Shown: positions 27,061 through 38,806, numbered from the whole stretch's first letter. The stretch is DNA of 62,908 nucleotides, filler included, from Bigelowiella natans CCMP2755 (GCA_000320545.1; 8 parts of 8 records of this genome joined end to end with filler, not necessarily neighbours in it), one strand, 5' to 3'. The notes: generated from the sequence alone by a model not told the origin. Translations and numbers: made by a program.

Positions 27061-27270
27061 NNNNNNNNNNNNNNNNNNNNNNNNNNNNNNNNNNNNNNNN
27101 NNNNTTAATTAATTAANNNNNNNNNNNNNNNNNNNNNNNNNNNNNNNNNNNNNNNNNNNNGTTTTCCTGCTTTTGCGAGAAGTTTGTGCGTGAGAAACGA
27201 CTTCTTCATGATCTCATCGCTTCATTCTCAACCCCGCCCCCCCATCTCCTCGAAATGCACCGAATGAATA

Positions 27271-27515
27271 GCTACGCGGCTTTGGAGGGCCCGGAGAAGG
27301 TGAAGGGGACGTTCAAAGAGCTGAAGAGGATGGGGTTCACTGCGCAGATGCTAACGACCGAAGCGAACCTAGTCGGGTGTGACCTCGACGCCATGACGAA
27401 GCGCCTCGTGTCGGCAGTGGGTGCGGCGGAGGAGGAGAAGGCATCTGACGATGAGGCGGAGGAAAGCAAAATGACCGAGCTACTTCCAGCACTACTGCGG
27501 GCCCTCGAGTCGTGA
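27271..27515 (+). CDS. 3' terminal exon of an unidentified gene (rest lost in gap)
   Basis: GC-rich frame YAALEGPEKVKGTFKELKRMGF...LLRALES-stop following an AG at about 27270. Confidence 0.45.
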
Positions 27516-28482
27516 TGAGCGCGCCCATAGCAGCAAACCTCGCCGTGCATGCCCACACGTTGCGGGTTAGTCTTCTTTGAGCTGCCTGCTGCGGGATGTG
27601 CTTCAGCTTGGAAGAAAAGACCAGTAGTGTTACGTGACGAGCAGCACATCATTTGAGCTAGCATGCATGATTCTCCGGTCTCGATCTAGCGATCCGCTGC
27701 TCGTTTCACCGTCTAGCCGTGCTCGTATTTTAGTTCATTGTTCATTTGCGACCCGGCCAAGCATGCTCTTTTATGCTTACACATTAACAATTACATAGCG
27801 TCAGCCAACTTAGGCACATTGCACCATATGAGGCATGCATCTATGTGTAGCCATCGCGACACATCTACAGTCGTAGATGCATACACAGCAAATATCTAGA
27901 CATCAAGCTAGCATGCAAGGTGCAGAATCAACAGCATATCAAATGATCATGCTAGCATGTGTGCATGCATCGTAACGCATATCTCGATCTCTCTGGATGC
28001 CATGTGAGACCCAATATAAGGTCCACCTAGCCATATACTAGATATACAGTTGTGTAGCAAGTGCTAGGGTGCCATGCTAGCATGCTAGCGCTCTAGCTAG
28101 CATAGCAAAATGTGTCTGCAATCTATCTATGCACATCTAGATATATATGCGCTCATTGCGAAGTAAGGATTCATCTACGCGCTACGCTAGACAATATTAT
28201 GCATAAAGTGATACAAAAAACTGAAACGTAGAAGTATATGCATGCAGCATGCAGCGTGACGCTACGACGACGACGACGCAAACAACAAACGACATCAACT
28301 GGACTGAGAGGCGGCAAGCTTCCGCTGATATCACCAGCACGTTGCTGCTTGTTGCCGCTACTGGCGAGGCTGTTTACTATGCTCTTGGTACACCGGCTGC
28401 TAGCTGCTACTTTATGCGTAGCGGCTCGCACCGCGGTCGTACTAGTTTAGTTCTGGCGGATGATGATAATGGATTCGTTCGC

Positions 28483-30557
28483 TCACTCCGCAGTCTTCTT
28501 CTCCTTGATAGCCACCGCGATGGAGAGCTCCTCGAGCTGCTTTCCTGTGATCTCGGAGGGCGCGTTGATCATGAGATCACGCCCCATCTTGTTCTTAGGG
28601 AAGGCGATGAAGTTGCGAATACTCGTCTCGTTGCCGAGGATGCTACAGAGCCGATCGAAGCCGAACGCCAGCCCGCCGTGCGGCGGCGCACCGTACTCGA
28701 ACGCGCCCATCAGGAAGCCAAACTGCTTCTCGGCCTCCTCCTTGGTGAAACCGAGCTTCTCAAACATCGTCATCTGGATGTCGCGGTCGTGGATACGGAT
28801 CGACCCGCCGCCGACCTCCACGCCGTTGATGACCATGTCGTACGCGTTTGCGCGCACCTTGCCGGGCTCGTCCTTGAGGTACTTGACGTCCTCTGGCTTG
28901 GGGCTCGTGAAGGGGTGATGCATTGCGCACCAGCGCTTCTCATCTTCGTCCCACTCGAACAACGGGAAGTCGACGACCCACAGCCCTATTTGGGGTAGCA
29001 GCAGCAGCAGCAGCAGCAGAGAAGAGGGGGGGGGAGAGGAGGGAAGGAGGGCAGGTAAGAACGATGTTTGCGAGGGGAGATACTAATGGTGGTGGTGGTG
29101 GTGGTGGTGGTGGTACACTCCCCCCGCCCCCCGCTCTCTCCCCCCTCCCTTTTCCATTCGAATGATCCAGACAGCAAGAAAGATGCACACAGCATAACAC
29201 TAGCCCTCCCAGCACCCCACACAGCGCAGCACCGCCATCGCCACAACCCAAACTTCTTCTCACCGTAGAAGCCCTTGTTCCTGAGACCGAGGCGTGTTCC
29301 CATTTCGTGGCGGAACTTGCCCATGGCGTCGCGCGCCTTGTTGTCATCGCCCCAGAAGACAAGGATCATGTCGCCGGTTTTTGCGCCGCACAGCTTTGCC
29401 CAGGCCGCGAGATCGGGGGCCTTGAAGAATTTATCAACCGACGATTTGAACTTACCGCTCTTCCCGTCCTCCCCCACCTCCTCGCACTTCACCCACACCA
29501 TTCCGCTGGCGCCGATGCTCTGGTCCTTTGCGAGCTTCTCGAGCTCTTTTATCTTCTTCTTCGAGTATTTGGCAAGGCCTTGTGGGGGGGAGAGGATGCA
29601 GAAGGGGAGGAGGAAGAGGTGTGGAGAGTCGTGATGGTTACTAAATTGTTGTTATAGTAGTAGTAGTAGTAGTAGTAGTAGTATGGTAGTGGCAGCAGTA
29701 GCAGTTGCAAGACTTACGATAAAATGGTGTACGCTGTTGTCATTATGATCGATTCTCGCAAGCACGAAGCCGCCACTAGCCGCATCGATCACCACAGCAT
29801 ATCCCCTCCCCCCCCCCTTCCCCATCACCTTCGCACACAATCCCGACGACGAGCTCCGATTCATCAAACATCTTGAGCCCCTTGCCCTTGGCGAGCTCGG
29901 TGAGGTTCTTTAGCTTCATCCCATACCGGAGGTCGGGCTTGTCAATCCCGTACGCACACGCACACGCACACACACGCACACATACACACCTCAATGAAGC
30001 CTTCGCCTGCAAGATAGTTCCTCACAACTTGGGCGCATTTTGCACGCAGGATGAGGGCGTCCTTCACAGGATCACGGCGAATGTCGAGGAAACGGTATCT
30101 GAGTGATTGGGAGGTGAGGCAAGGTTAAGGCGGAGTCGTAGGACGAGCGTGCGCGGGGGGGATTCGTTGTGCGTGCTGGTAGATGATGGCGGTGATGAAA
30201 TTCATTGTAGAAATGATGATGATGATGGTGGTAAGATTGATGTTGATGGTGGTGATGACGATGTTTGATCTCCCACACAAACGACTACTTCATGCGGATT
30301 TCCTCAAGACCGTCAGTCTCCGATTCGATCTTGAATGGCGGAGTTTTTGACTGGTTCAGGACTTTGATGCTGCGAAGGTAGGTATGAGTATATATATTCA
30401 ATTGTGGGTGCAAGCAAAAGGGAAGGTCGGTTTCACACGCAGCCCCAACAACACCCCCCTTCGTTCACCCCCCCCCTACCCATCGCACCTTGTTGGCGCT
30501 AGCTCGATAGCTCCGGTAGCCTTATCCTTTGATTTGTTCGAGCGCTCAATCACCTGT

Positions 30558-30603
<46 letters not shown>

Positions 30604-31760
30604 GTGAGGTAGGGTTGGAAAGAGGAGGGGGAGAGGGGGAAGGGGGGGGGGGGCACTTTCCATTTGTCGGACCTATCTATTTATCCACTTGTCGATTAAC
30701 TATTCCACAACGTTTATCAAACTACCCCTGTGACGAGCCTAAATATTCCCTTCCACCCCTCACCCCCTTTATCACCACCACGACGCCCTTCATCGAGGTT
30801 CTATACCTTTCCCGTCACTTGGATGACATACTCGCGACCGAGCTTCCTTGCGATCTCGTAACGCTCCTTCTCCCCCTGAAAGAAGGGTGGAGGGACGTAC
30901 GTTAGAACGGGGATGAATAATCTATCTAGTTGAATGATAGTCGTTTTTTTGGGTGTGTCATTGAAAGGCTCACACGCCCATGGGTGGGGCATCCTTCTGT
31001 GCGAACTGAATGCATCGGAAACGCAGGAGGAGCACCTTTTTCTCCTCTGGTGGGTTATCTCCCGGGTTAGGAAAGACGCACTGCGTCTGCCCATATCTAG
31101 ATGATGCCGTAATTATAAAGTGTGGGTAACGATGAATAATTATAAGATAGGCAATCCTCAGGGATTCAGTGATTTCGCTTCATGTGCAGTGTTCGGTGGA
31201 AAAAGTCATCTCTCTTTCTCCTCCCCTTTCCCCCCGCTTAACCCCCCCTCACGCATCCGCTGCTCGTTAATCTAACTTAAATGGGGAAGAAGTCAAGCTC
31301 GTATGTGTTGAAGGGATGCATCGTCAGGGCGAATGTCAGTTGCTGCAAAGTGAAGTTCGGCACCTATCACGGATATCCACGAAGGCCATACCGCGCTGGT
31401 CGCGGCTCTTTTGAACCCAACCAGACAATGTAACTTCCTTGCCAACATCGCCTATTCGCAGCTCGCCGCAACTGTTCGTATCATCCCGAAGAACGGGGAA
31501 CACAGGCGGAAAATTGGCGATCAAAATACGGCAGAACCAAGATCTTAAAATTATTTGCGGGCGATGTGCCTCGTTCACCATTGTTTTCTTGGTCTGCATT
31601 CTTACCTATGCGTACGATATCCCGTAGTTTTGGTATACTTTACTTCTGGCTCCTTTGACTCCATGTTCTTCTTCTCCTGAGGAAAGTATTGGGTTGAGTT
31701 GGAGAAAAACAAACCACGAGAATATAACCACCACCGGAGGAGCGGGCGGAAAGTAAACAT
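28483..31760 (-). CDS. aspS: Bacterial-type (organellar) aspartyl-tRNA synthetase, multi-exon, central segment missing in this assembly
   Basis: YRTHSCGELR...[10 protein letters not shown]...[35 protein letters not shown]...[31 protein letters not shown] (GAD insertion), [10 protein letters not shown]...[41 protein letters not shown] (motif 3), IAFPK. Confidence 0.95.
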
Positions 31761-33298
31761 AATTCGCAATTACTCTATGCGTGCGAAAGTTTGATTTAAT
31801 CCAAAATGTGTGGATTTAGGGCGAATTCATCAAAAGAGGTGGAAAGATAGGAAACATGTTGGGCCGGGGGGGTGGAAGGCTGACCTTCGGGTTATGCGCA
31901 GCAAGGAGCCCTGGGTGTCGGAGATCCTGGAGTACCAAAAATTACCGGTATTTTATCCAGAAATAAGGATAAAGTCATGTCGCAAGAGGAAAACGCAACA
32001 TATTCGAAATTCGGGAAACTCCGCAGCGATTTTTCCTGGATTTTCTCCTGCGGAGAGATCGTCTTAGAATCAAATGAGCGGAAGTTGATGACCTCCAACC
32101 CGAAAACATCCTAAAAAAGTTGACCCAATGTACCCACTCCCACCTTTCGTTGTCTTATCGGGATTTTGGCTGTCGCACGCATTCCAATCGAGGGCTCAAA
32201 TCAGAAGGAATTCTCATATGATCAGTTCAGAACGAATTTCGTCCATGTCTGTCGAAGCAACTTCTTTTCCTTTGGCTGCGACTGGAATTATGGGGTTTGC
32301 GTATCTTTATGTTTGGGAGCTCAGTGGTCATTTGTGGATCCAGCAGGCTGCACTTCTGGTCTTACCAACTGCTTCTGGCTACGTGCTGAGGAAACATTTT
32401 TTCGGCCCGTCAACATACTCCTGGGAAATTTATTTCTCACGTTAATTTACAAAATGCATAAAAAGTGCGGACATCTTTTTGGCTAGTCAACGGCTTGAGA
32501 CTTGAGACCAAGGCTGGAAGCCAATTATAGACCAGTGGCTGGGAGCAACTCAGTAGCTTGGTTGGGCAAAATCAATGATATAGCTGAGAGAAATCGGGCG
32601 TAATATTCCAAATCAAGTGGCTTGTATCCTTGTCTCAATCAAAATTACCTCGGCATTAATATCCCCACTACTTCTCCCTTCCAGGCCTGAATGGAATCAG
32701 GCCACGCGACAGACGTGACTTTGTGATCTTCCCTCCGAATCTGGAAAAGGACATCGAATCCCTCAACTGCGACTCACTCTACAGGCCTTCTGTGCAGAAA
32801 TCACACGGCGTTCAGTAAAGGTTCATCTCCGATTGCGCACGTTCCCAGGCGATCTCAGCCGGTTTTCCTTGATATTTCCGTGATTCGGTTGAACTTGCCC
32901 AAAATGCCACGGGTTTTCTCCTCGAATACACACTTCCACCACTTTTCTCTGTCCGTGGCAGAACGAACCAGCAATCAGGTTCTCCCCCTCAGCACACACT
33001 CAAAAGGAATTTTGGTTTGGAGGTTCGTTACACGCTCGGCCTGGGCTAGCTTGGAGAGTAACGGTTGGTACTCTCCAGATGGTCCAGCAACCGAGCGTGA
33101 GAAAATCCGAGTTTTACCTTGCTAGATAGGGATGAGAGAGGCAGCACTGATGGATCGCTAGTCCAATGAAAAAAACCCTTTGTTCTCTGCAGTGCGCAGA
33201 TGCAATGATCCTCATAAAATATTAAAGAATGTGACATTTGATGCAAATCGTGTGATCGCTGTAACACTAAACCCAGTCCTAATCATCAATTGACAGAG

Positions 33299-35467
33299 AT
33301 GAAGGCATCTGAAAAGGCCGCCGCTGATGCGACTCCCTGCGAGATCGTAAACAAGGTCTGCAACGAGCCGAGCTCTAACCCTAAGAACGGGTCGAAGGCA
33401 AAGGATGCTCAGAGTCCTGGCCTGATCCTCCCTCTCGGTCTGTGCGTGCTTCAAGTCGCCATCGTGAAAAGGATGTGGGGAGACGAGTGGCAGACGATGT
33501 ACAACCCGTTTGGCACCGGTGTATCGATCGTCTACCCCATTGTCGCCACGGTGCTCTACCTCATCATGGTTTTCGGCGGCCAGAGGATCATGAAGGATAG
33601 GAAGCCGTTCGACGACTTCTGCAAGCCATACATGCTCGTTTACAACCTCTACCAGACCGTATTCAACAGCTGGTGGGTCGTGATGACCGTCTACGAGGTG
33701 TACAAGTTGGGCTACCCGCTGTTCCGACTGAGCCTGAAGCTGAACCAAGAGCAGTTTAACTTGGGTTTCCTCATCTGGCTCCACTACCAGAACAAGTACC
33801 TCGAGATGCTGGACACGACCTTCATGGTGTTGCGTAAGAAGAGCAAACAGATTTCATTCCTCCACTGCTACCACCACGTGCTACTTGTGTGGTCATGGTA
33901 CGCGGTCTGCAAGTTCGGCTGCGGCGGGGAGGCCTACTTCGGCGCATTGATGAACGCGATCATCCACGTGATGATGTACGGCTACTACTTCCTTTCAACC
34001 TTAAAGGTCACTGTTCCTTGGAAGCGTCATCTGACCTCTATGCAGATGGGACAGTTCGTCTGCTGCCTCTCCCACAGCATCTGGTGCTTTGTGAGCGGTG
34101 TTTACCCTCGCTCTCTCTGCCTCCTCAACATGTGGGTGATGATCTGCATGCTGTACCTCTTCAACCGCTTCTACACCCAAGCCTACAGAAACAAGAAGAA
34201 GAAGAAGGGGGCGGCTGCGTCCGAGAGCTCCGCGAAGGAGGAGGCTGAGAAGCAGCACACCGATGAGAAGTCTCGCAGCTACGTGTATCTCAACGGCCTG
34301 AAATACGATGTGACGGAGTTCGCACCTCGCCACCCCGGGGGGAAAGTGATCCAGTACTACCTCAACCAGGATTGCACCGACGCTTATCAAGCCTTTCACC
34401 GCTCCTCCAAGAAGGCCGCCGCGGCGCTGAAGAAGCTTCCACGAGTGAAAGCTGCTCCCAAGGAGATCCCTGAGCAGCCTGCCTACGTGATGGAGTACCG
34501 CGAGCTGGTCAAGAAGTGGACCAAGATGGGGCTCTACAAGGTGAACTGGGGTGTCATTGGGCTTCGCATGGCTGAAATCGTCGCTTGCCTGGTATTCTCC
34601 GTCTACTACGCGCGACACTCGATAGTCATTGCCGGCGCCGTTGCAGGCTACGCCTGGTCTAAGTGCGGGTTCCTGCAGCACGACGCCGGTCATCTCGGCA
34701 TCACAGGGAACTCGGACATCGACATCATGATCCAGGTTGTCACGGAGGGCTTCGCGAAGGGGGGCACGGCGGCCTGGTGGCGCAACCGGCACAACAAGCA
34801 CCACGCCAAGCCCAACGTGCACTCGCAGGACACGGATCTCATCACCCTGCCCTTCCTCTCGTGGGACAAGGAGCACGCGAAGGGCGCGCCCAAGTGGCTC
34901 ATCCGGTACCAGGCCTACTACTTCCTCCCCCTCCTCTGCCTCTACGTGCCCATCTTCTTCATCACGACGAAGCTGTTTATGTGGAGGAAGAAGAAACCCC
35001 TCGAGGCGTGCGTGTCGCTGCTCCACTACATCGTGTTCGTCTCCGCGCTCCAACAGTGGAGCGGGCTCACGGGGGCGGCAACCGCGGCGTGGTTTCTCGT
35101 CGGCTACGCGGTGCAGGGGGTCTACCTCGGCTTCTCCTTCTCTCTCTCCCACTTCGCCATGCCGCACATCCACTCCGCGGACGGCGCCAAGAACATGGAC
35201 TGGGTGAAGCTCCAATGCAACACCACGCTCGATTTTAGCAGGAGCGAGATCATCGGATGGCTAACCGGCCACCTCAACCTGCAGATCGAGCACCACCTCT
35301 GCCCAACCATGCCCACCATGAACTACCAGTACATGCGCGAGGACGTACGCAAGCTGTGCGACAAGTATCCCGAAGACCTCCACTACACCTCGATGAGCTT
35401 CTGGGAGGCTGTCAAGCTCAACTTCGGAACTCTCAACGAGGTTGCGAGGCACCGCTGCGCCAATTAA
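33299..35467 (+). CDS. Fused PUFA elongase (GNS1/SUR4 ELO) - cytochrome b5 - front-end fatty acid desaturase, 722 aa in one uninterrupted ORF
   Basis: ELO motifs KYLEMLDT, QISFLHCYHH (His at 33863), HVMMYGYY and TSMQMGQ. Charged linker at about 34193-34278. Cytochrome b5 HPGG (34331). Desaturase boxes HDAGH (34679), HNKHH (34790) and QIEHH (35282). No stop, intron or gap between the domains. Confidence 0.97.
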   Translation: MKASEKAAADATPCEIVNKVCNEPSSNPKNGSKAKDAQSPGLILPLGLCVLQVAIVKRMWGDEWQTMYNPFGTGVSIVYPIVATVLYLIMVFGGQRIMKDRKPFDDFCKPYMLVYNLYQTVFNSWWVVMTVYEVYKLGYPLFRLSLKLNQEQFNLGFLIWLHYQNKYLEMLDTTFMVLRKKSKQISFLHCYHHVLLVWSWYAVCKFGCGGEAYFGALMNAIIHVMMYGYYFLSTLKVTVPWKRHLTSMQMGQFVCCLSHSIWCFVSGVYPRSLCLLNMWVMICMLYLFNRFYTQAYRNKKKKKGAAASESSAKEEAEKQHTDEKSRSYVYLNGLKYDVTEFAPRHPGGKVIQYYLNQDCTDAYQAFHRSSKKAAAALKKLPRVKAAPKEIPEQPAYVMEYRELVKKWTKMGLYKVNWGVIGLRMAEIVACLVFSVYYARHSIVIAGAVAGYAWSKCGFLQHDAGHLGITGNSDIDIMIQVVTEGFAKGGTAAWWRNRHNKHHAKPNVHSQDTDLITLPFLSWDKEHAKGAPKWLIRYQAYYFLPLLCLYVPIFFITTKLFMWRKKKPLEACVSLLHYIVFVSALQQWSGLTGAATAAWFLVGYAVQGVYLGFSFSLSHFAMPHIHSADGAKNMDWVKLQCNTTLDFSRSEIIGWLTGHLNLQIEHHLCPTMPTMNYQYMREDVRKLCDKYPEDLHYTSMSFWEAVKLNFGTLNEVARHRCAN

Positions 35468-35939
35468 ATTCCTGTTGGGGGGGGGGGAGGCGAAAAGCAC
35501 GCATATAGCTGTAGGATTTAAGAAGGAAATATTCGGGTGCGTCCCCGCATATTGCCAGCGACAACTCTTCGCCCTCTTCGACAACTCCAAATAATGGCGA
35601 GAGCGGGAGGAATTAGATACAGGCCACAGACGAGTATACTGTATTACGTCTGATGATGATATCGACGCTGATGCTGCTTGTTAGTAGTGGCATCTATGCT
35701 TCGATCGGAGATTATGATCCATTCCCAATAAGGAGGTGAAATGCATGCCTCAGCATTCCATGTAGTACCCATCCACTATCAAAGCTTAGCTCGCCATCTA
35801 AATTTGCCGTTGCGACGGGAAAAGCGGCGCACAAAAATATATGCATGGATGTCGCAGCTTGTTATTGGAGCAAGAGCAATGTCTAGGTGTAACACACGTG
35901 TGTGTGCTGTGCGCACAGCAGCAGCATGCAAATGTGCAA

Positions 35940-36350
35940 GCTGCTGGGTGTAAACCATGCCCCACATTTCATTTCCCTACTAGTAAAACGGCAGCAGTAG
36001 CAAAAATTGCGAAAATGCGCAATGCAACATGAAAATTTGCCTACACTGACGACCTCCCGCTGAACTGCATTGCTAGAATGACATAGTGCAAATCATAGGC
36101 ACATCACATGTCTTTGTTCATTGTGAAAACAATCTTTGTTGAAAATGACACAGCAAAAATTCACAGCAGAGCATCGCGTCATTGCCCATATTGCTCAATT
36201 TGTTAGCAATGCAAGATCCATCCTGAACCATTCTCCAACATGACCACAGCGCAGAGTATGCAAATTTTCATGTTGCGCATTTTCACAATGCTTTGCTACT
36301 GATTGCAGTTGTGAAATGAATAAATGTGGGGCATGGTTCATGCCCACAGC
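35940..36350. mobile_element. MITE-like element / long imperfect inverted repeat
   Basis: Left arm about 35940-36050 (AACCATGCCCCACATTT...CAGTAGCAAA...AAAATGCGCAA...GCAACATGAAAATTTGC) mirrors right arm about 36250-36350 (GCAAATTTTCATGTTGC, TTGCGCATTTT, TTTGCTACTG, AAATGTGGGGCATGGTT) around a spacer of about 200 bp. No ORF, and no clear target-site duplication seen. Confidence 0.55.
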
Positions 36351-36987
36351 ATGTGATAATCGACTTGCAGGTTTTTGTCTAGTTTGATTGCACGTTAGAC
36401 ATACATGGGCCCCTGTGTCGAAACATTCATAGATTTCTCAAGCTTTGCATGCACATCTAGCTAGCTAGACATGTGCGGATGTGTTGATCGGAATAAGTGT
36501 GCGATCGATTTGAATTCTTTCTCATAGACAAATGCAACGTGCATGCAACTGAAGCAATGCGCAGCGCCCGATGCTGCTACATATTGTGTCATTCGATGCA
36601 ACGCACTGCGATCAGGCACTGTGGCGCACATCTACTAGCTAGACGACATGTGCTGCGATCAATGCCTACCTTGCTAGCTCATTGTGCTTGCGCGGTACGA
36701 TGATGCAATGAAACAGAAACATGAGGCCATAGTAGTGTGGCAATGCAACACGCTCAGCGGCCAGTCATCATCATAACCAAACGCAACAATGTTCCCCAAT
36801 GCATCTAGCCATAGAAGGATCGCATTGTGCCATTATTGACTCGGTTACGTCGATCTAGGCGTGCACACTCCAGGCTGGTGGTTGGGCTTTACACATAGTG
36901 CCCATCGAATAAACGCTATGGATGGAACTCCAACTGCCTCCGCGCCATCTACCATATCGTGGTGGCCATGCATTGCCATCAACTAGA

Positions 36988-38806
36988 TCAGATGACTGCG
37001 CTCGCGCCCTTGTGGTCTGGCGATGGCAGGTTCTTCGACTTCATCACGAAGTCAGTTCGATTATTCGATTGGTTTGCTGCCATCCTTGCCTGCACACATG
37101 ACAATTATCTCAATAATTCTCTCAAGGGAGGAGCCGAACAATAGCTCAATGCACTGCGCTATCACACGAAGGGAAAATGCCTCATACGGCCGAGACAGAA
37201 TGCTAGCTAAGGAGAAGAGAAGCGCATCATTTGAACATTTTCGTCGTTTCCTGTGGGGTGCTAACGTACCCGTGCAGACCTTGATGACACCTTCTTGAAT
37301 CCTGGATACGTTGATCACAAAAGCAAAGGAGAGCAACACATATGTGAATGGATGGACAACTCGTTACCAGGCCGAACATGCACGCTTTGTCCCTCTGCCT
37401 CTCACACTCGCACGCACGTATATAAATGCACACGCACACACACACACACACACGCACACGTGCGCTGGTGTGTTCTCAAAATGCGTAATGTGGGACGATG
37501 GAGCAGCAGGAAGTTGTACCGGAGAAATGAGCCCCCACGTAGCACCTCTTGTAGGCGATGAACGCGATCAAGCCTTCACAAATACCCAAAAAAAACCCGA
37601 AGGTACAACGTAAAATGACGACAGGAGGAAGAGAAAAAAAAAAAAAATCTGATGAGCTGGATAGAAGCAAATGGGAGCAAATCATGCCGAAATGCGTAAA
37701 GATGAATATGGTTTGCTGTGGCAGTATACAAAGCTTAGATCAACAAACCTATTACGCAAAGCACGAAAATAGTAGCAAAGATCGCAGCCTGCAATACAAA
37801 GGCACAAGAAAAAGTGTGGAGAGATAATTAAGAAACCCCCAGACGACTTGGACGGTAGAAAAGCAAATTGCAAACAAAGAAATTCTCTACGTGTGTGAAG
37901 AGGAAAAACACCGGATATATGAGAGACAACCCCGATAATAAATTGAAAGCGACTAGAGCGGAAAAGGAAGAGGGGGTCAGCACTCTAAACTTGCTCTTGA
38001 GCAAGTTTTTAGCGATGCATGGAACCCCCCCGCCCCCCTCTTTCTCCACAGATTCAAGGTGATTTTTCGCAAATTTACTCACCGCTGCGTCCCTCCCTTC
38101 TTTCTCAGAATCATCATCACCCCCTAAGCAGACGAGTCATACAATTGGGAAGAGCGTAAGGAATAGTCGCAACGGCAGGAGGACGAGAATTGAAGCTTCC
38201 CTCCCTCCCTCCCTCCCAACCTTCATACATCAACAAAACGGGCCCTCTTCCCTTCCCACCTGTTCCGCCGCCGCCGCCGCCACTGCCCCCATTATTGTTG
38301 GAACCAAGGATGCCCCTGTCGCTTTGTACATTCCCCGTGATGACGAGGCTGTAGTTCTATAGGCCACAGAGGACGATAGCAGGAGCAAGAGGTCCGTTGA
38401 TCATCGAGATATTGACAAAATGGGGGTTTATAGGGCGCCGCATACGCAAAAGCACATTCCACACACGGGGGCGCAGGATTCACCCCCCCGCCCCCCCAGG
38501 AATCCTTTCGTTTTGGTTTAGTAGGACCTGAGTGGTGGAGGCCACAAGAGTTTTCGCCGTTACGGTGACAAGGTAAGGGTCATTTGTTTTGGTGGGAAGA
38601 AACCGCTCAGTGAAAGAATGGGGGAGTGAGTGAGTATGGGAGTAGGCTAAATCGATTGTTGATGGGGCTGCCCCCCCCCCCCGTAAATTCTCTCCTGTTT
38701 CATTCGTGTCCGAGGACTCTTTTCTCACCGTTTGTGAGGGACGTGTTGGCAATGTGGATGCGCTCGACGTTGTTCAGGGTATCGGCTGATGCGGCGCGAC
38801 CGTTTG
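36988..38806 (-). CDS. Possible 3' part of an unidentified multi-exon gene
   Basis: Candidate AG-started exons LDRVHRLQEVLRGGSFLR (about 37520-37575), IQEGVIKVCT (about 37270-37300) and ARMAANQSNNRTDFVMKSKNLPSPDHKGASAVI-stop (about 36988-37089). Confidence 0.25.

Follow-up and report, generated by a model that had tools for sequence, protein, structure and literature searches.

Elongases of the ELO family and cytochrome b5-fused desaturases are, to our knowledge, separate proteins in all characterised cases except that of Euglena. In the DNA examined here (the window, 62,908 nucleotides from Bigelowiella natans CCMP2755, made up of parts of eight records of the genome joined end to end with filler), an earlier note described a second such case, which it proposed as a candidate for a single polypeptide converting EPA to DPA and then to DHA. 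The locus raises the questions of whether this fusion is genuine, where its two halves belong and which reactions they may catalyse. The precedent on which the note drew is a real one, the Euglena DHA synthase EgDHAsyn, described by Damude et al. in 2008 (WO2008/124048, cited by PMC13326528), being a C20/delta-5 elongase fused to a delta-4 desaturase. Our overall reading, held with considerable confidence, is that the locus encodes a chlorarachniophyte two-module fusion that is independent of the Euglena one and whose desaturase lies outside the classical delta-4 clade.

Architecture of the encoded protein

The ORF listing and the translation agree on a single stop-free frame of 722 codons at 33299-35467 (+), and together with Pfam and motif evidence they define a complete, single-exon ELO–cytochrome b5–desaturase coding sequence (CDS) of 722 amino acids plus TAA. 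It opens with the first ATG (33299), downstream of an in-frame TGA at 33239, and closes with the TAA at 35465-35467; the N-terminus so defined, MKA..., matches that of Chlorarachnion reptans P0001 in the alignment. The description of one intact frame carrying an elongase, a charged linker, a cytochrome b5 and a front-end desaturase is borne out, and a residue-level check recovered all of the motifs quoted in the earlier note, with every catalytic motif intact. The composition of the CDS (GC 57%, GC3 83.5%, against 48-51% GC in the flanks) is that expected of a real, codon-biased gene. Overlapping and antisense ORFs at 34001-35215 (-), 33212-33784 (-) and 34663-35238 (+) gave no Pfam match and are shadow ORFs, and a Pfam search of the neighbouring ORFs across 27161-38806 returned zero matches, which means that the fusion gene does not sit in a cluster of PUFA genes. 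A retrogene origin of the single-exon gene was considered and rejected, as no poly(A) tract was found 3' of the stop codon. The closest matches of the ELO half and the desaturase half alike come from chlorarachniophyte genera, and the locus is a real nuclear gene, in all likelihood that of a chlorarachniophyte (Rhizaria).

The N-terminal half contains an ELO (GNS1/SUR4) condensing-enzyme domain at residues 77-303 (33527..34207, +; Pfam PF01151, E 6.7e-58), preceded by an extra hydrophobic helix, GLILPLGLCVLQVAIV, at residues 41-56 (33419..33466, +; hydropathy peak 1.74). This helix, which is presumably membrane-spanning, is kept in the chlorarachniophyte fusions and also aligns in the Euglena DHA synthase, where it is likewise N-terminal to the ELO domain. 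The extent first given for the elongase, 33420-34190, was approximately right, except that 33419-33466 is this pre-domain helix and the Pfam domain itself runs from 33527 to 34207. The boxes of the ELO family are KxxExxDT, HxxHH, NxxxHxxMYxYY and TxxQxxQ, and all four are present, viz. KYLEMLDT (166-173), the catalytic His box QISFLHCYHH (184-193; 33848..33877, +) with a canonical HxxHH, NAIIHVMMYGYY (219-230) and TSMQMGQF (246-253). The Gln in a His box of this type is typical of PUFA-type ELOs. Compared with the solved human ELOVL7 structure 6Y7F, the ELO half matches at E 1e-31, and its HxxHH aligns to QVTFLHVFHH.

The cytochrome b5 domain lies at residues about 328-392 (34280..34474, +; Pfam PF00173 match 315-379, E 1.4e-10) and holds the HPGG haem-ligand motif at residues 345-348 (34331-34342, +) and the second haem-ligand His, H367, in AFHRSS (34391-34408, +); H345, P346, G347, G348 and H367 are invariant in the alignment of the fusion with its relatives. 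The membrane fatty-acid desaturase domain follows at residues 444-691 (34628..35371, +; Pfam PF00487 FA_desaturase, E 1.7e-30). Within it, the motif check placed His box 1, HDAGH, at residues 461-465 (34679..34693, +), the His box 2 region, WWRNRHNKHHAKPN, at 34775..34816 (+), with HNKHH of the H-x2-HH form at residues 498-502, and His box 3, QIEHH, in the Gln form, at residues 662-666 (35282..35296, +). Front-end desaturases carry H-x3-4-H, H-x2-3-HH and Q/H-x2-3-HH boxes with Gln in the third (PMC3423564), and the HPGG motif, the second haem His and the three His boxes mark this half as a cytochrome b5-fused front-end desaturase. The folds of the modules are established by the Pfam hits and the ELOVL7 match.

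Read in this way, the protein would be one ER-membrane polypeptide, of predicted location and topology, whose two catalytic modules both serve long-chain PUFA synthesis. Its N-terminal ELO would condense acyl-CoA with malonyl-CoA, the first and specificity-determining step of two-carbon elongation, and the C-terminal di-iron front-end desaturase would receive electrons via its own fused cytochrome b5. Since the C-terminus of the ELO, like the b5 domain, is cytosolic in known family members, topology allows the two to be joined directly.

The junction and its origin

It is extremely improbable that the fusion is an artefact, i.e. a chimeric assembly or a read-through of two adjacent genes between which a stop, frameshift or intron really lies. 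The frame is open over all 722 codons with the high GC3 maintained throughout, and the junction is common to three independent chlorarachniophyte transcript/protein datasets, colinear and gap-free. In the transcriptome MMETSP0109 of Chlorarachnion reptans the protein P0001 (711 aa, 74% identity) is a colinear, unbroken fusion; a second colinear fusion, P0002 (726 aa, 69% identity), is encoded by an mRNA-sized JGI contig of 2278 nt (CDS 3-2183); and an Amorphochlora fragment, P0083, crosses the junction from the ELO into HPGG. The gene-record look-up found neither a genomic record of the Amorphochlora fusion locus nor a gene call for the B. natans fusion itself. At the level of sequence, these relatives confirm that the fusion is not an assembly artefact, and they suggest that the B. 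natans gene yields a single transcript.

The charged, Lys/Ala/Glu-rich linker RNKKKKKGAAASESSAKEEAEKQHTDEKSRS occupies residues 297-327 (34187..34279, +) in the junction alignment. The stand-alone chlorarachniophyte ELOs P0084-P0091 (e.g. Amorphochlora amoebiformis AAMO2058_000610100), which are 64-72% identical to the ELO half and share its clade (99*), have a Lys/Ala-rich tail homologous to the linker and terminate within this equivalent stretch, without b5 or desaturase. This homology between the linker and a tail that occurs naturally in stand-alone ELOs again argues against an artefact, and the linker is, as the alignment indicates, derived from that C-terminal tail. The fusion originated among the chlorarachniophytes, the Lys/Ala-rich tail of a resident ELO having been joined to a b5-desaturase from outside the classical delta-4 clade. 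The Amorphochlora ELO gene contains introns and extends over 6.9 kb; the B. natans fusion gene is a single exon.

An origin shared with the Euglena enzyme can be judged from the Euglena gracilis ELO–b5–DES protein, which was recovered as P0175/P0306 (793 aa) in a cluster holding the Swiss-Prot delta-4 desaturase Q6WNG7. Both proteins have, by Pfam, the order ELO–linker–cytochrome b5–desaturase in one polypeptide, and their ELO halves are 44% identical (E 1e-69) and both of subfamily ELO-A. In contrast, identity drops to 26% between the desaturase halves, which fall in different clades, with HDGNH and H-x3-HH in Euglena versus HDAGH and H-x2-HH in B. natans; the Euglena enzyme has large insertions relative to the B. 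natans fusion, and its linker, longer by about 55 residues, is unrelated in sequence. Activity has been demonstrated for the Euglena enzyme. In the ELO tree each of the two ELOs has stand-alone ELOs closer to it than the other fusion is, which indicates that the fusions arose independently; the independence that had been raised earlier as a possibility is further supported by the non-homologous linkers and the separate desaturase clades. A tandem of two ELO domains matching the Euglena ELO coordinates, P0166, is present in UniParc only and was disregarded, being in all probability a construct engineered for a patent.

Affinities of the two halves and candidate reaction pairs

In the ELO tree the elongase half sits inside the chlorarachniophyte clade (99*), along with complete stand-alone ELOs, and this clade nests in ELO-A, the Euglena C20-elongase subfamily, which also contains ELOs from four to five fusions of the delta-4 type, including one whose domain order is reversed. 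The proposed resemblance to C20 (delta-5) elongases thus holds, given the 44% identity to the Euglena C20 ELO domain and the shared subfamily.

The delta-4 desaturase of Isochrysis, to which the other half had been likened, is generally grouped with the Euglena, Pavlova and Thraustochytrium delta-4 enzymes. In the desaturase tree the delta-4 clade has support of 100/100 and the B. natans desaturase belongs to a separate one (97/98), sister at 80/87 to a clade with HExGH. Identity is 26% to the Euglena delta-4 enzyme and 38-50% within its own clade. The second His box has the form H-x2-HH in 67/69 members of the B. natans clade (RHNKHH in B. natans itself) and H-x3-HH (e.g. QHVIGHH) in 8/8 members of the delta-4 clade, and the box1-to-box3 spacing is shorter in the former (median 194 vs 223). 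The reading of the desaturase half as a delta-4 enzyme of the classical algal type is, therefore, not supported. Forcing its clade together with the delta-4 clade gave a delta lnL of 16 in the AU test, a marginal result (p = 0.087) by which the union is not formally rejected; placed by sequence outside the classical delta-4 clade, the half could possibly still have a convergent delta-4 activity.

Sequence searches and name look-ups found no functionally characterised enzyme in the B. natans desaturase clade, so that all assignments of regiospecificity are indirect. The named anchors among the relatives are the Euglena delta-4/DHA synthase and the 'delta-5' annotation names of trypanosomatid proteins. 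It is from the latter that the HExGH clade takes its 'delta-5' label, which is also supported by the HEAGH and HEMGH motifs reported for delta-5 enzymes characterised from Leishmania and Thraustochytrium (PMC3423564). His-box motifs were rejected as decisive markers of regiospecificity, as characterised delta-5 enzymes vary in this respect (HDASH, HDSSH, HEMGH, HEAGH, HDYGH and HDANH; PMC3423564). Look-alikes of both halves in the ESM Atlas carry generic names only, with nothing on regiospecificity. Regiospecificity also switches between close paralogues, e.g. vertebrate FADS1 and FADS2.

Further information comes from other fusions, which were found in at least eight combinations of elongase clade and desaturase clade, including some in giant-virus genome bins, and which extend to reversed DES–ELO order and to triple ELO–Des–Des proteins. 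Only two desaturase clades, that of B. natans and that of the delta-4 enzymes, were seen in fusions with ELO-A and ELO-B. Fused proteins of about 616 aa with the same ELO–b5–desaturase architecture occur in the choanoflagellate Stephanoeca diplocostata (P0020), in many marine metagenome proteins and in giant-virus MAGs (IMG/VR P0169, P0066), some being encoded on giant-virus contigs. Their desaturases belong to the B. natans clade (38-42% identity) and share with it WWRNRHNKHHA and the QIEHH-non-Phe signature, whereas their ELOs form a deep separate clade, ELO-B (99*), with 32-36% identity to the B. natans ELO, and they are without the N-terminal extension. A variant QxxHH His box is present in 12/20 ELO domains of ELO-B fusions and is found neither in the B. 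natans ELO (canonical HCYHH) nor in its clade. No functionally characterised member was found among these ~616-aa proteins. On the giant-virus contigs L005 and L012, a fusion with a B. natans-type desaturase lies about 7 kb from a separate HExGH (delta-5-type) b5-desaturase.

Most likely the two modules catalyse neighbouring steps of one pathway; their functional coupling and their substrate specificities we infer. An ELO releases a 3-ketoacyl-CoA, which needs a reductase, a dehydratase and a reductase before a desaturase can use it, and direct hand-over is consequently chemically possible only from desaturase to elongase, and only with a desaturase that uses acyl-CoA.

As a DHA synthase, convergent with that of Euglena, the protein would elongate EPA (20:5n-3) to 22:5n-3 by a C20 (delta-5) ELO and then form DHA by a non-canonical delta-4 desaturase, a reading that we consider possible but doubtful. 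It would suit the identity of the ELO half to the Euglena C20 elongase domain, the occurrence of this ELO subfamily, in several lineages and in either domain order, in fusions with classical delta-4 desaturases, and the restriction of the partners of ELO-A and ELO-B to the B. natans and delta-4 desaturase clades. The separate delta-5-type enzyme of the viruses fits a route from delta-5 desaturase through delta-5 ELO to delta-4 desaturase, and delta-4 affinity survives the AU test. The identity, second His box, spacing and clade of the desaturase all count against it, however, and since this half is not of the delta-4 clade, it is the ELO half that is left to carry the label 'EPA to DPA to DHA'. 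The lipid profile is also at odds with that call: EPA, the major chlorarachniophyte PUFA, was the sole one recovered of four PUFAs surveyed in Chlorarachnion SAG 26.97, DHA not being recovered (PMC3175173), and 22:5 has been reported from Chlorarachniophyceae (Leblond 2005, cited in PMC9292221), these data coming from few strains and partly via secondary citation. If the fused delta-4 step were efficient, little 22:5 should be left, and the reported 22:5 therefore counts against a DHA synthase.

A pairing that would end in EPA joins a delta-9 elongase (18:2/18:3 to 20:2/20:3) to a delta-8 desaturase (giving 20:3n-6/20:4n-3), which would feed a separate delta-5 desaturase; the viral fusion and its delta-5-type neighbour would together complete such a delta-9/delta-8/delta-5 route, and EPA is the main PUFA of chlorarachniophytes. 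The delta-9-specific Isochrysis elongase IgASE1 is reportedly distinguished (Qi et al. 2003) by the QxxHH variant that 12/20 ELO-B fusions with the B. natans-type desaturase show. The B. natans ELO, however, has the canonical HxxHH and belongs to the Euglena C20 subfamily, not to ELO-B, and the tree anchors include no characterised delta-8 desaturase or delta-9 elongase; we consider this pairing unlikely.

A delta-5 or delta-6 desaturase paired with the preceding or following elongase is a serious possibility, though one advanced tentatively. Such a protein could combine a delta-6 ELO and then a delta-5 desaturase (an EPA/ARA synthase), a delta-5 desaturase and then a delta-5 ELO (EPA then 22:5, a 'DPA synthase'), or a delta-6 desaturase and then a delta-6 ELO. 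EPA and 22:5 are exactly the PUFAs reported from chlorarachniophytes, and only the desaturase-then-elongase order makes the product of one domain the direct substrate of the other; the order of domains need not mirror that of reactions, and reversed DES–ELO fusions exist. The HExGH clade, with its trypanosomatid delta-5 enzymes, is the sister (80/87) of the B. natans desaturase clade, but this relationship is weakly supported, and the giant-virus genomes hold a B. natans-type desaturase beside a separate delta-5-type one, which argues against simple delta-5 redundancy. The role of a delta-6 ELO is, moreover, ill-suited to the C20-elongase affinity of the ELO half. Some other substrate pairing of the two modules seems improbable.

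Recurrence of elongase–desaturase fusion

In the searchable literature, the 2008 Euglena patent was the only source found for a natural elongase–desaturase fusion, and papers on choanoflagellate FADS (PMC13572491), chromerids (PMC7464705) and viral cytochrome b5 (PMC11537341) do not describe one. A 2026 review asks why the fused form, if efficient, has not evolved more often (PMC13326528). The chlorarachniophyte protein offers an answer, as fusion did recur, in an independent case, with a desaturase of a different clade and in several chlorarachniophyte genera. It is conceivable, if rather unlikely, that B. natans has a second, convergent single-polypeptide synthase of DHA (or another C22-PUFA), combining a C20 elongase with a delta-4-acting member of a never-characterised desaturase clade, which circulates fused to another elongase in giant viruses as a portable PUFA module. 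If this convergent DHA-synthase reading is true, elongase–desaturase fusion would be a recurrent evolutionary solution, not a Euglena oddity. The natural panel of enzymes makes it testable whether fusion relieves the dichotomy between acyl-CoA and phospholipid substrates, and it offers new compact parts for the engineering of omega-3 production. As the desaturase clade is apparently uncharacterised, knowing the function of the B. natans protein would assign one to a large set of enzymes from marine organisms and viruses.

The fusion gene and its chlorarachniophyte counterparts

The fusion gene lies on the plus strand of the piece spanning positions 27161-38806, as a 722-codon ORF that runs from the ATG at 33299 to the TAA at 35465-35467 and is preceded by an in-frame TGA at 33239. 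Pfam domains for ELO (residues 77-303, E 6.7e-58), Cyt-b5 (residues 315-379, E 1.4e-10) and FA_desaturase (residues 444-691, E 1.7e-30), all on the plus strand, share this one reading frame. All four ELO boxes (KYLEMLDT, QISFLHCYHH, NAIIHVMMYGYY and TSMQMGQF) are intact, as are the HPGG motif and second haem-ligand histidine of the cytochrome b5 and the three desaturase His boxes (HDAGH, HNKHH and QIEHH); the ORF, Pfam and motif checks thus bear out in every detail the fusion ORF with full motifs described in the earlier note. The ELO His box matches that of human ELOVL7, which has a solved structure (6Y7F), residue for residue (E 1e-31). The coding sequence is codon-biased (GC3 83.5%, GC 57%), with flanks of 48-51% GC, and no family match was found for the antisense and overlapping ORFs at the gene or for the neighbouring ORFs in the same piece. 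A pyrimidine-rich stretch at 33170-33195, some 105 nt ahead of the ATG and with ttgttctctgcag at its end, has the look of a 3' splice acceptor and may mark a 5' UTR intron. A ten-G run (ttgggggggggggag, 35467-35490) stands immediately 3' of the stop codon.

The 711 aa protein P0001, from the Chlorarachnion reptans transcriptome (MMETSP0109/EukProt), is colinear with the fusion protein over its full length at 74% identity, and P0002 (726 aa) is 69% identical, its CDS (3-2183) being alone on an mRNA-sized 2278-nt JGI contig. An Amorphochlora fragment, P0083, extends from the ELO domain across the linker as far as HPGG. The best matches to the ELO half come from Amorphochlora, Partenskyella and Norrisiella (64-72%) and point to a chlorarachniophyte as the probable source of the gene. 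On this sequence evidence, the elongase–desaturase fusion is real rather than an artefact, and is conserved across genera. In the transcript-derived Lotharella globosa protein P0003 (UniRef A0A7S3ZBG0, 511 aa), the N-terminal region and first helix are kept and the ELO core (approximately window residues 98-288) is absent, after which the protein continues in frame into linker, b5 and desaturase (alignment A1, columns 1-300); either a misassembly or an alternative isoform may lie behind this.

Affinities of the two halves and the Euglena precedent

The earlier note had named a Euglena precedent, which is documented: Damude et al. (2008, WO2008/124048), as cited in a 2026 review (PMC13326528), reported that in Euglena gracilis a delta-5 elongase and a delta-4 desaturase are naturally made as a translational fusion. 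The protein itself was recovered by exhaustive HMMER search and cluster look-up (P0175/P0306, 793 aa, EukProt EG_transcript_2988), with ELO + Cyt-b5 + FA_desaturase architecture and a 90% cluster that includes Swiss-Prot Q6WNG7, a characterised acyl-lipid (7-3)-desaturase, i.e. a delta-4 desaturase. The ELO halves of the two fusions are 44% identical (E 1e-69), whereas their desaturase halves share only 26% identity (E 7e-11).

A 161-row tree of ELOs puts that of the window in a chlorarachniophyte clade (99*) that mixes fused and complete stand-alone ELOs and is nested in the subfamily ELO-A (83-88 rows). This subfamily also takes in the ELO of the Euglena DHA synthase, the ELOs of other delta-4-type fusions (P0172, P0180 and P0188) and that of the reversed DES-ELO protein P0309. 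Homology and repeated fusion to delta-4 desaturases support the window's elongase being of the C20/delta-5 kind, and the earlier proposal to that effect gains from both the identity to the Euglena ELO and the ELO-A placement.

The desaturase was placed in a quick 154-row tree and a careful 63-row tree (LG+C20+F+G4, ultrafast bootstrap/SH-aLRT). In the careful tree the delta-4 clade (Euglena, P0180, P0172, P0080 and P0309) is supported at 100/100, with a branch of 1.68, and the window's desaturase lies outside it, in a separate clade (97/98) that counts 28 rows here and 69 in the large tree. Discrete characters agree with this placement: the second His box is H-x3-HH in 8/8 delta-4-clade members and H-x2-HH, within WWRNRHNKHHA, in the window and 67 of the 69 members of its clade, and the median spacing from box 1 to box 3 is 223 in the former and 194 in the latter. 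Forcing the two clades together cost 16 log-likelihood units in an AU test (p = 0.087), a preference for their separation that falls short of formal rejection. We take the Isochrysis delta-4 enzyme to group with those of Euglena, Pavlova and Thraustochytrium, and the Isochrysis-type delta-4 likeness that had been read into this desaturase is therefore not supported. Name look-ups of ten further proteins gave Pteridomonas danica and environmental sequences as the named members of the window's clade, and no characterised enzyme was found among them. The sister of this clade (80/87) is one with an HExGH first box, which includes trypanosomatid 'delta-5' enzymes; motifs HEAGH and HEMGH have been reported for characterised delta-5 desaturases of Leishmania and Thraustochytrium (PMC3423564).

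Complete stand-alone chlorarachniophyte ELOs (P0084-P0091) carry a Lys/Ala-rich C-terminal tail of 20-45 residues, their completeness being indicated by a stop and 3' region on the P0084 contig and by the label 'type:complete' on two others. The linker of the fusions is this same stretch, leading directly into the b5 domain; that of Euglena exceeds it by about 55 residues and is unrelated to it. Each fused ELO also has stand-alone relatives closer to it than the other fusion's ELO, and the two desaturase halves come from different clades, so that the chlorarachniophyte fusion is independent of the Euglena one, a possibility that had already been raised. The fusion gene is a single exon of 2.2 kb. 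A stand-alone ELO paralogue of Amorphochlora amoebiformis (GCA_054601695.1, L090:6001-12899) encodes 324 aa over 6.9 kb and is therefore intron-rich by comparison. A recent retrogene origin of the fusion is not indicated, as no poly(A) tract was found 3' of its stop codon.

Combinations of clades and giant-virus versions

Scanned locally for domains and assigned to clades, the full set of retrieved proteins shows that elongase–desaturase fusion is recurrent and combinatorial. ELO-A is joined to the window's desaturase clade in chlorarachniophytes and to delta-4 desaturases in Euglena and others, in reversed DES-ELO order too; ELO-B is joined to the window's desaturase clade in 19 proteins of ~616 aa, including P0020 of the choanoflagellate Stephanoeca, and to delta-4 in P0080. 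ELO-C occurs with HExGH (green alga Chloroparvula P0189, P0205), with delta-6/8-like desaturases (P0285, and P0229 with two ELO domains) and with both in P0183, and ELO-D with HExGH in P0198. The exhaustive search also returned putative three-enzyme polypeptides, ELO-b5-DES-b5-DES (P0183, 1181 aa; P0178, 1025 aa). In P0183 a QxxHH-box ELO is combined with two desaturases, one delta-6/8-like and the other HExGH and delta-5-type, so that the entire C18-to-C20 PUFA route could lie on one chain. The desaturase precedes the ELO in P0309 (739 aa; a delta-4-clade desaturase with an ELO of the window's subfamily), P0174, P0173 and P0305, and P0229 (1052 aa) reads ELO-ELO-b5-DES.

ELO-B fusions are found on giant-virus contigs as well. 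The ENA scaffold with P0056 (L003:10001-11896) has dense genes on both strands, among them PIF1, PhoH, DUF1599, Eco57I, GIY-YIG, RING and Ras. A scan of IMG/VR gave 621-aa fusion ORFs on GVMAG contigs L005-L008 and L012 (e.g. L005:6390-8255 and L012:1600-3465, both plus strand), whose desaturase domains match P0169 at 87-99% identity, together with stand-alone relatives. Viral ELO-b5-desaturase ORFs in these metagenome bins measure 621-631 aa and lie near genes typical of giant viruses (NUDIX, HNH, ConA-like, PIF1, PhoH, GIY-YIG and RING); the 621-aa type has eroded ELO boxes, and its ELO domain now escapes detection by Pfam. No paper describing viral elongase–desaturase fusions was found in the literature. 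L005 (15260-16183) and L012 (10453-11436) each encode a further b5-desaturase some 7 kb downstream, distinct from the fusion and belonging to the HExGH, delta-5-type clade; it is on the plus strand and cut by the contig end in both, and its presence beside the fusion suggests a multi-step viral PUFA module.

Catalysed steps and implications

The relatives show two intact catalytic modules staying together across genera, and we infer that they catalyse neighbouring reactions of LC-PUFA synthesis in the ER. Affinity to ELO-A points to C20 elongation as the role of the window's ELO. The argument for a DHA synthase, i.e. a delta-5-ELO/delta-4 pairing, holds for this half but fails for the desaturase, which leaves the earlier label as one possibility among several, and a somewhat doubtful one. 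Pairing of such a fusion with a separate delta-5-type desaturase on L005 and L012 argues that the window's desaturase clade is not simply delta-5; it would fit delta-9-ELO/delta-8 + delta-5, delta-6/delta-6-ELO + delta-5, or delta-5 + delta-5-ELO/delta-4. A delta-9-ELO/delta-8 pairing in the window is unlikely. The QxxHH variant, reported as characteristic of the delta-9-specific elongase IgASE1 (Qi et al. 2003), occurs in 12 of 20 ELO-B domains; the window's own ELO has the canonical HxxHH.

Elongases of this family yield a 3-ketoacyl-CoA, which needs a ketoreductase, dehydratase and enoyl reductase before desaturation, and there can therefore be no direct channelling from the ELO to the desaturase domain. 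By established ELO chemistry, an intermediate could be handed over directly only in the desaturase-to-ELO direction, and then only if the desaturase acts on acyl-CoA. Coupling to a delta-5 or delta-6 desaturase is a tentative reading, at less than even chance, and includes a desaturase-first order, delta-5 then delta-5-ELO, of which the products would be EPA and 22:5; anything else is very unlikely. EPA was the sole PUFA recovered of four surveyed in Chlorarachnion SAG 26.97 (PMC3175173), and 22:5 is attributed to Chlorarachniophyceae (Leblond et al. 2005, via PMC9292221); no report of DHA in chlorarachniophytes was found in the literature.

Judged from sequence, chlorarachniophytes have independently evolved a new version of the Euglena-type multizyme. 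This fusion bears directly on a question posed in the 2026 review (PMC13326528), namely why elongase–desaturase fusions did not evolve more often, and it exposes a recurrent, largely unremarked architecture, giant-virus genome bins included.
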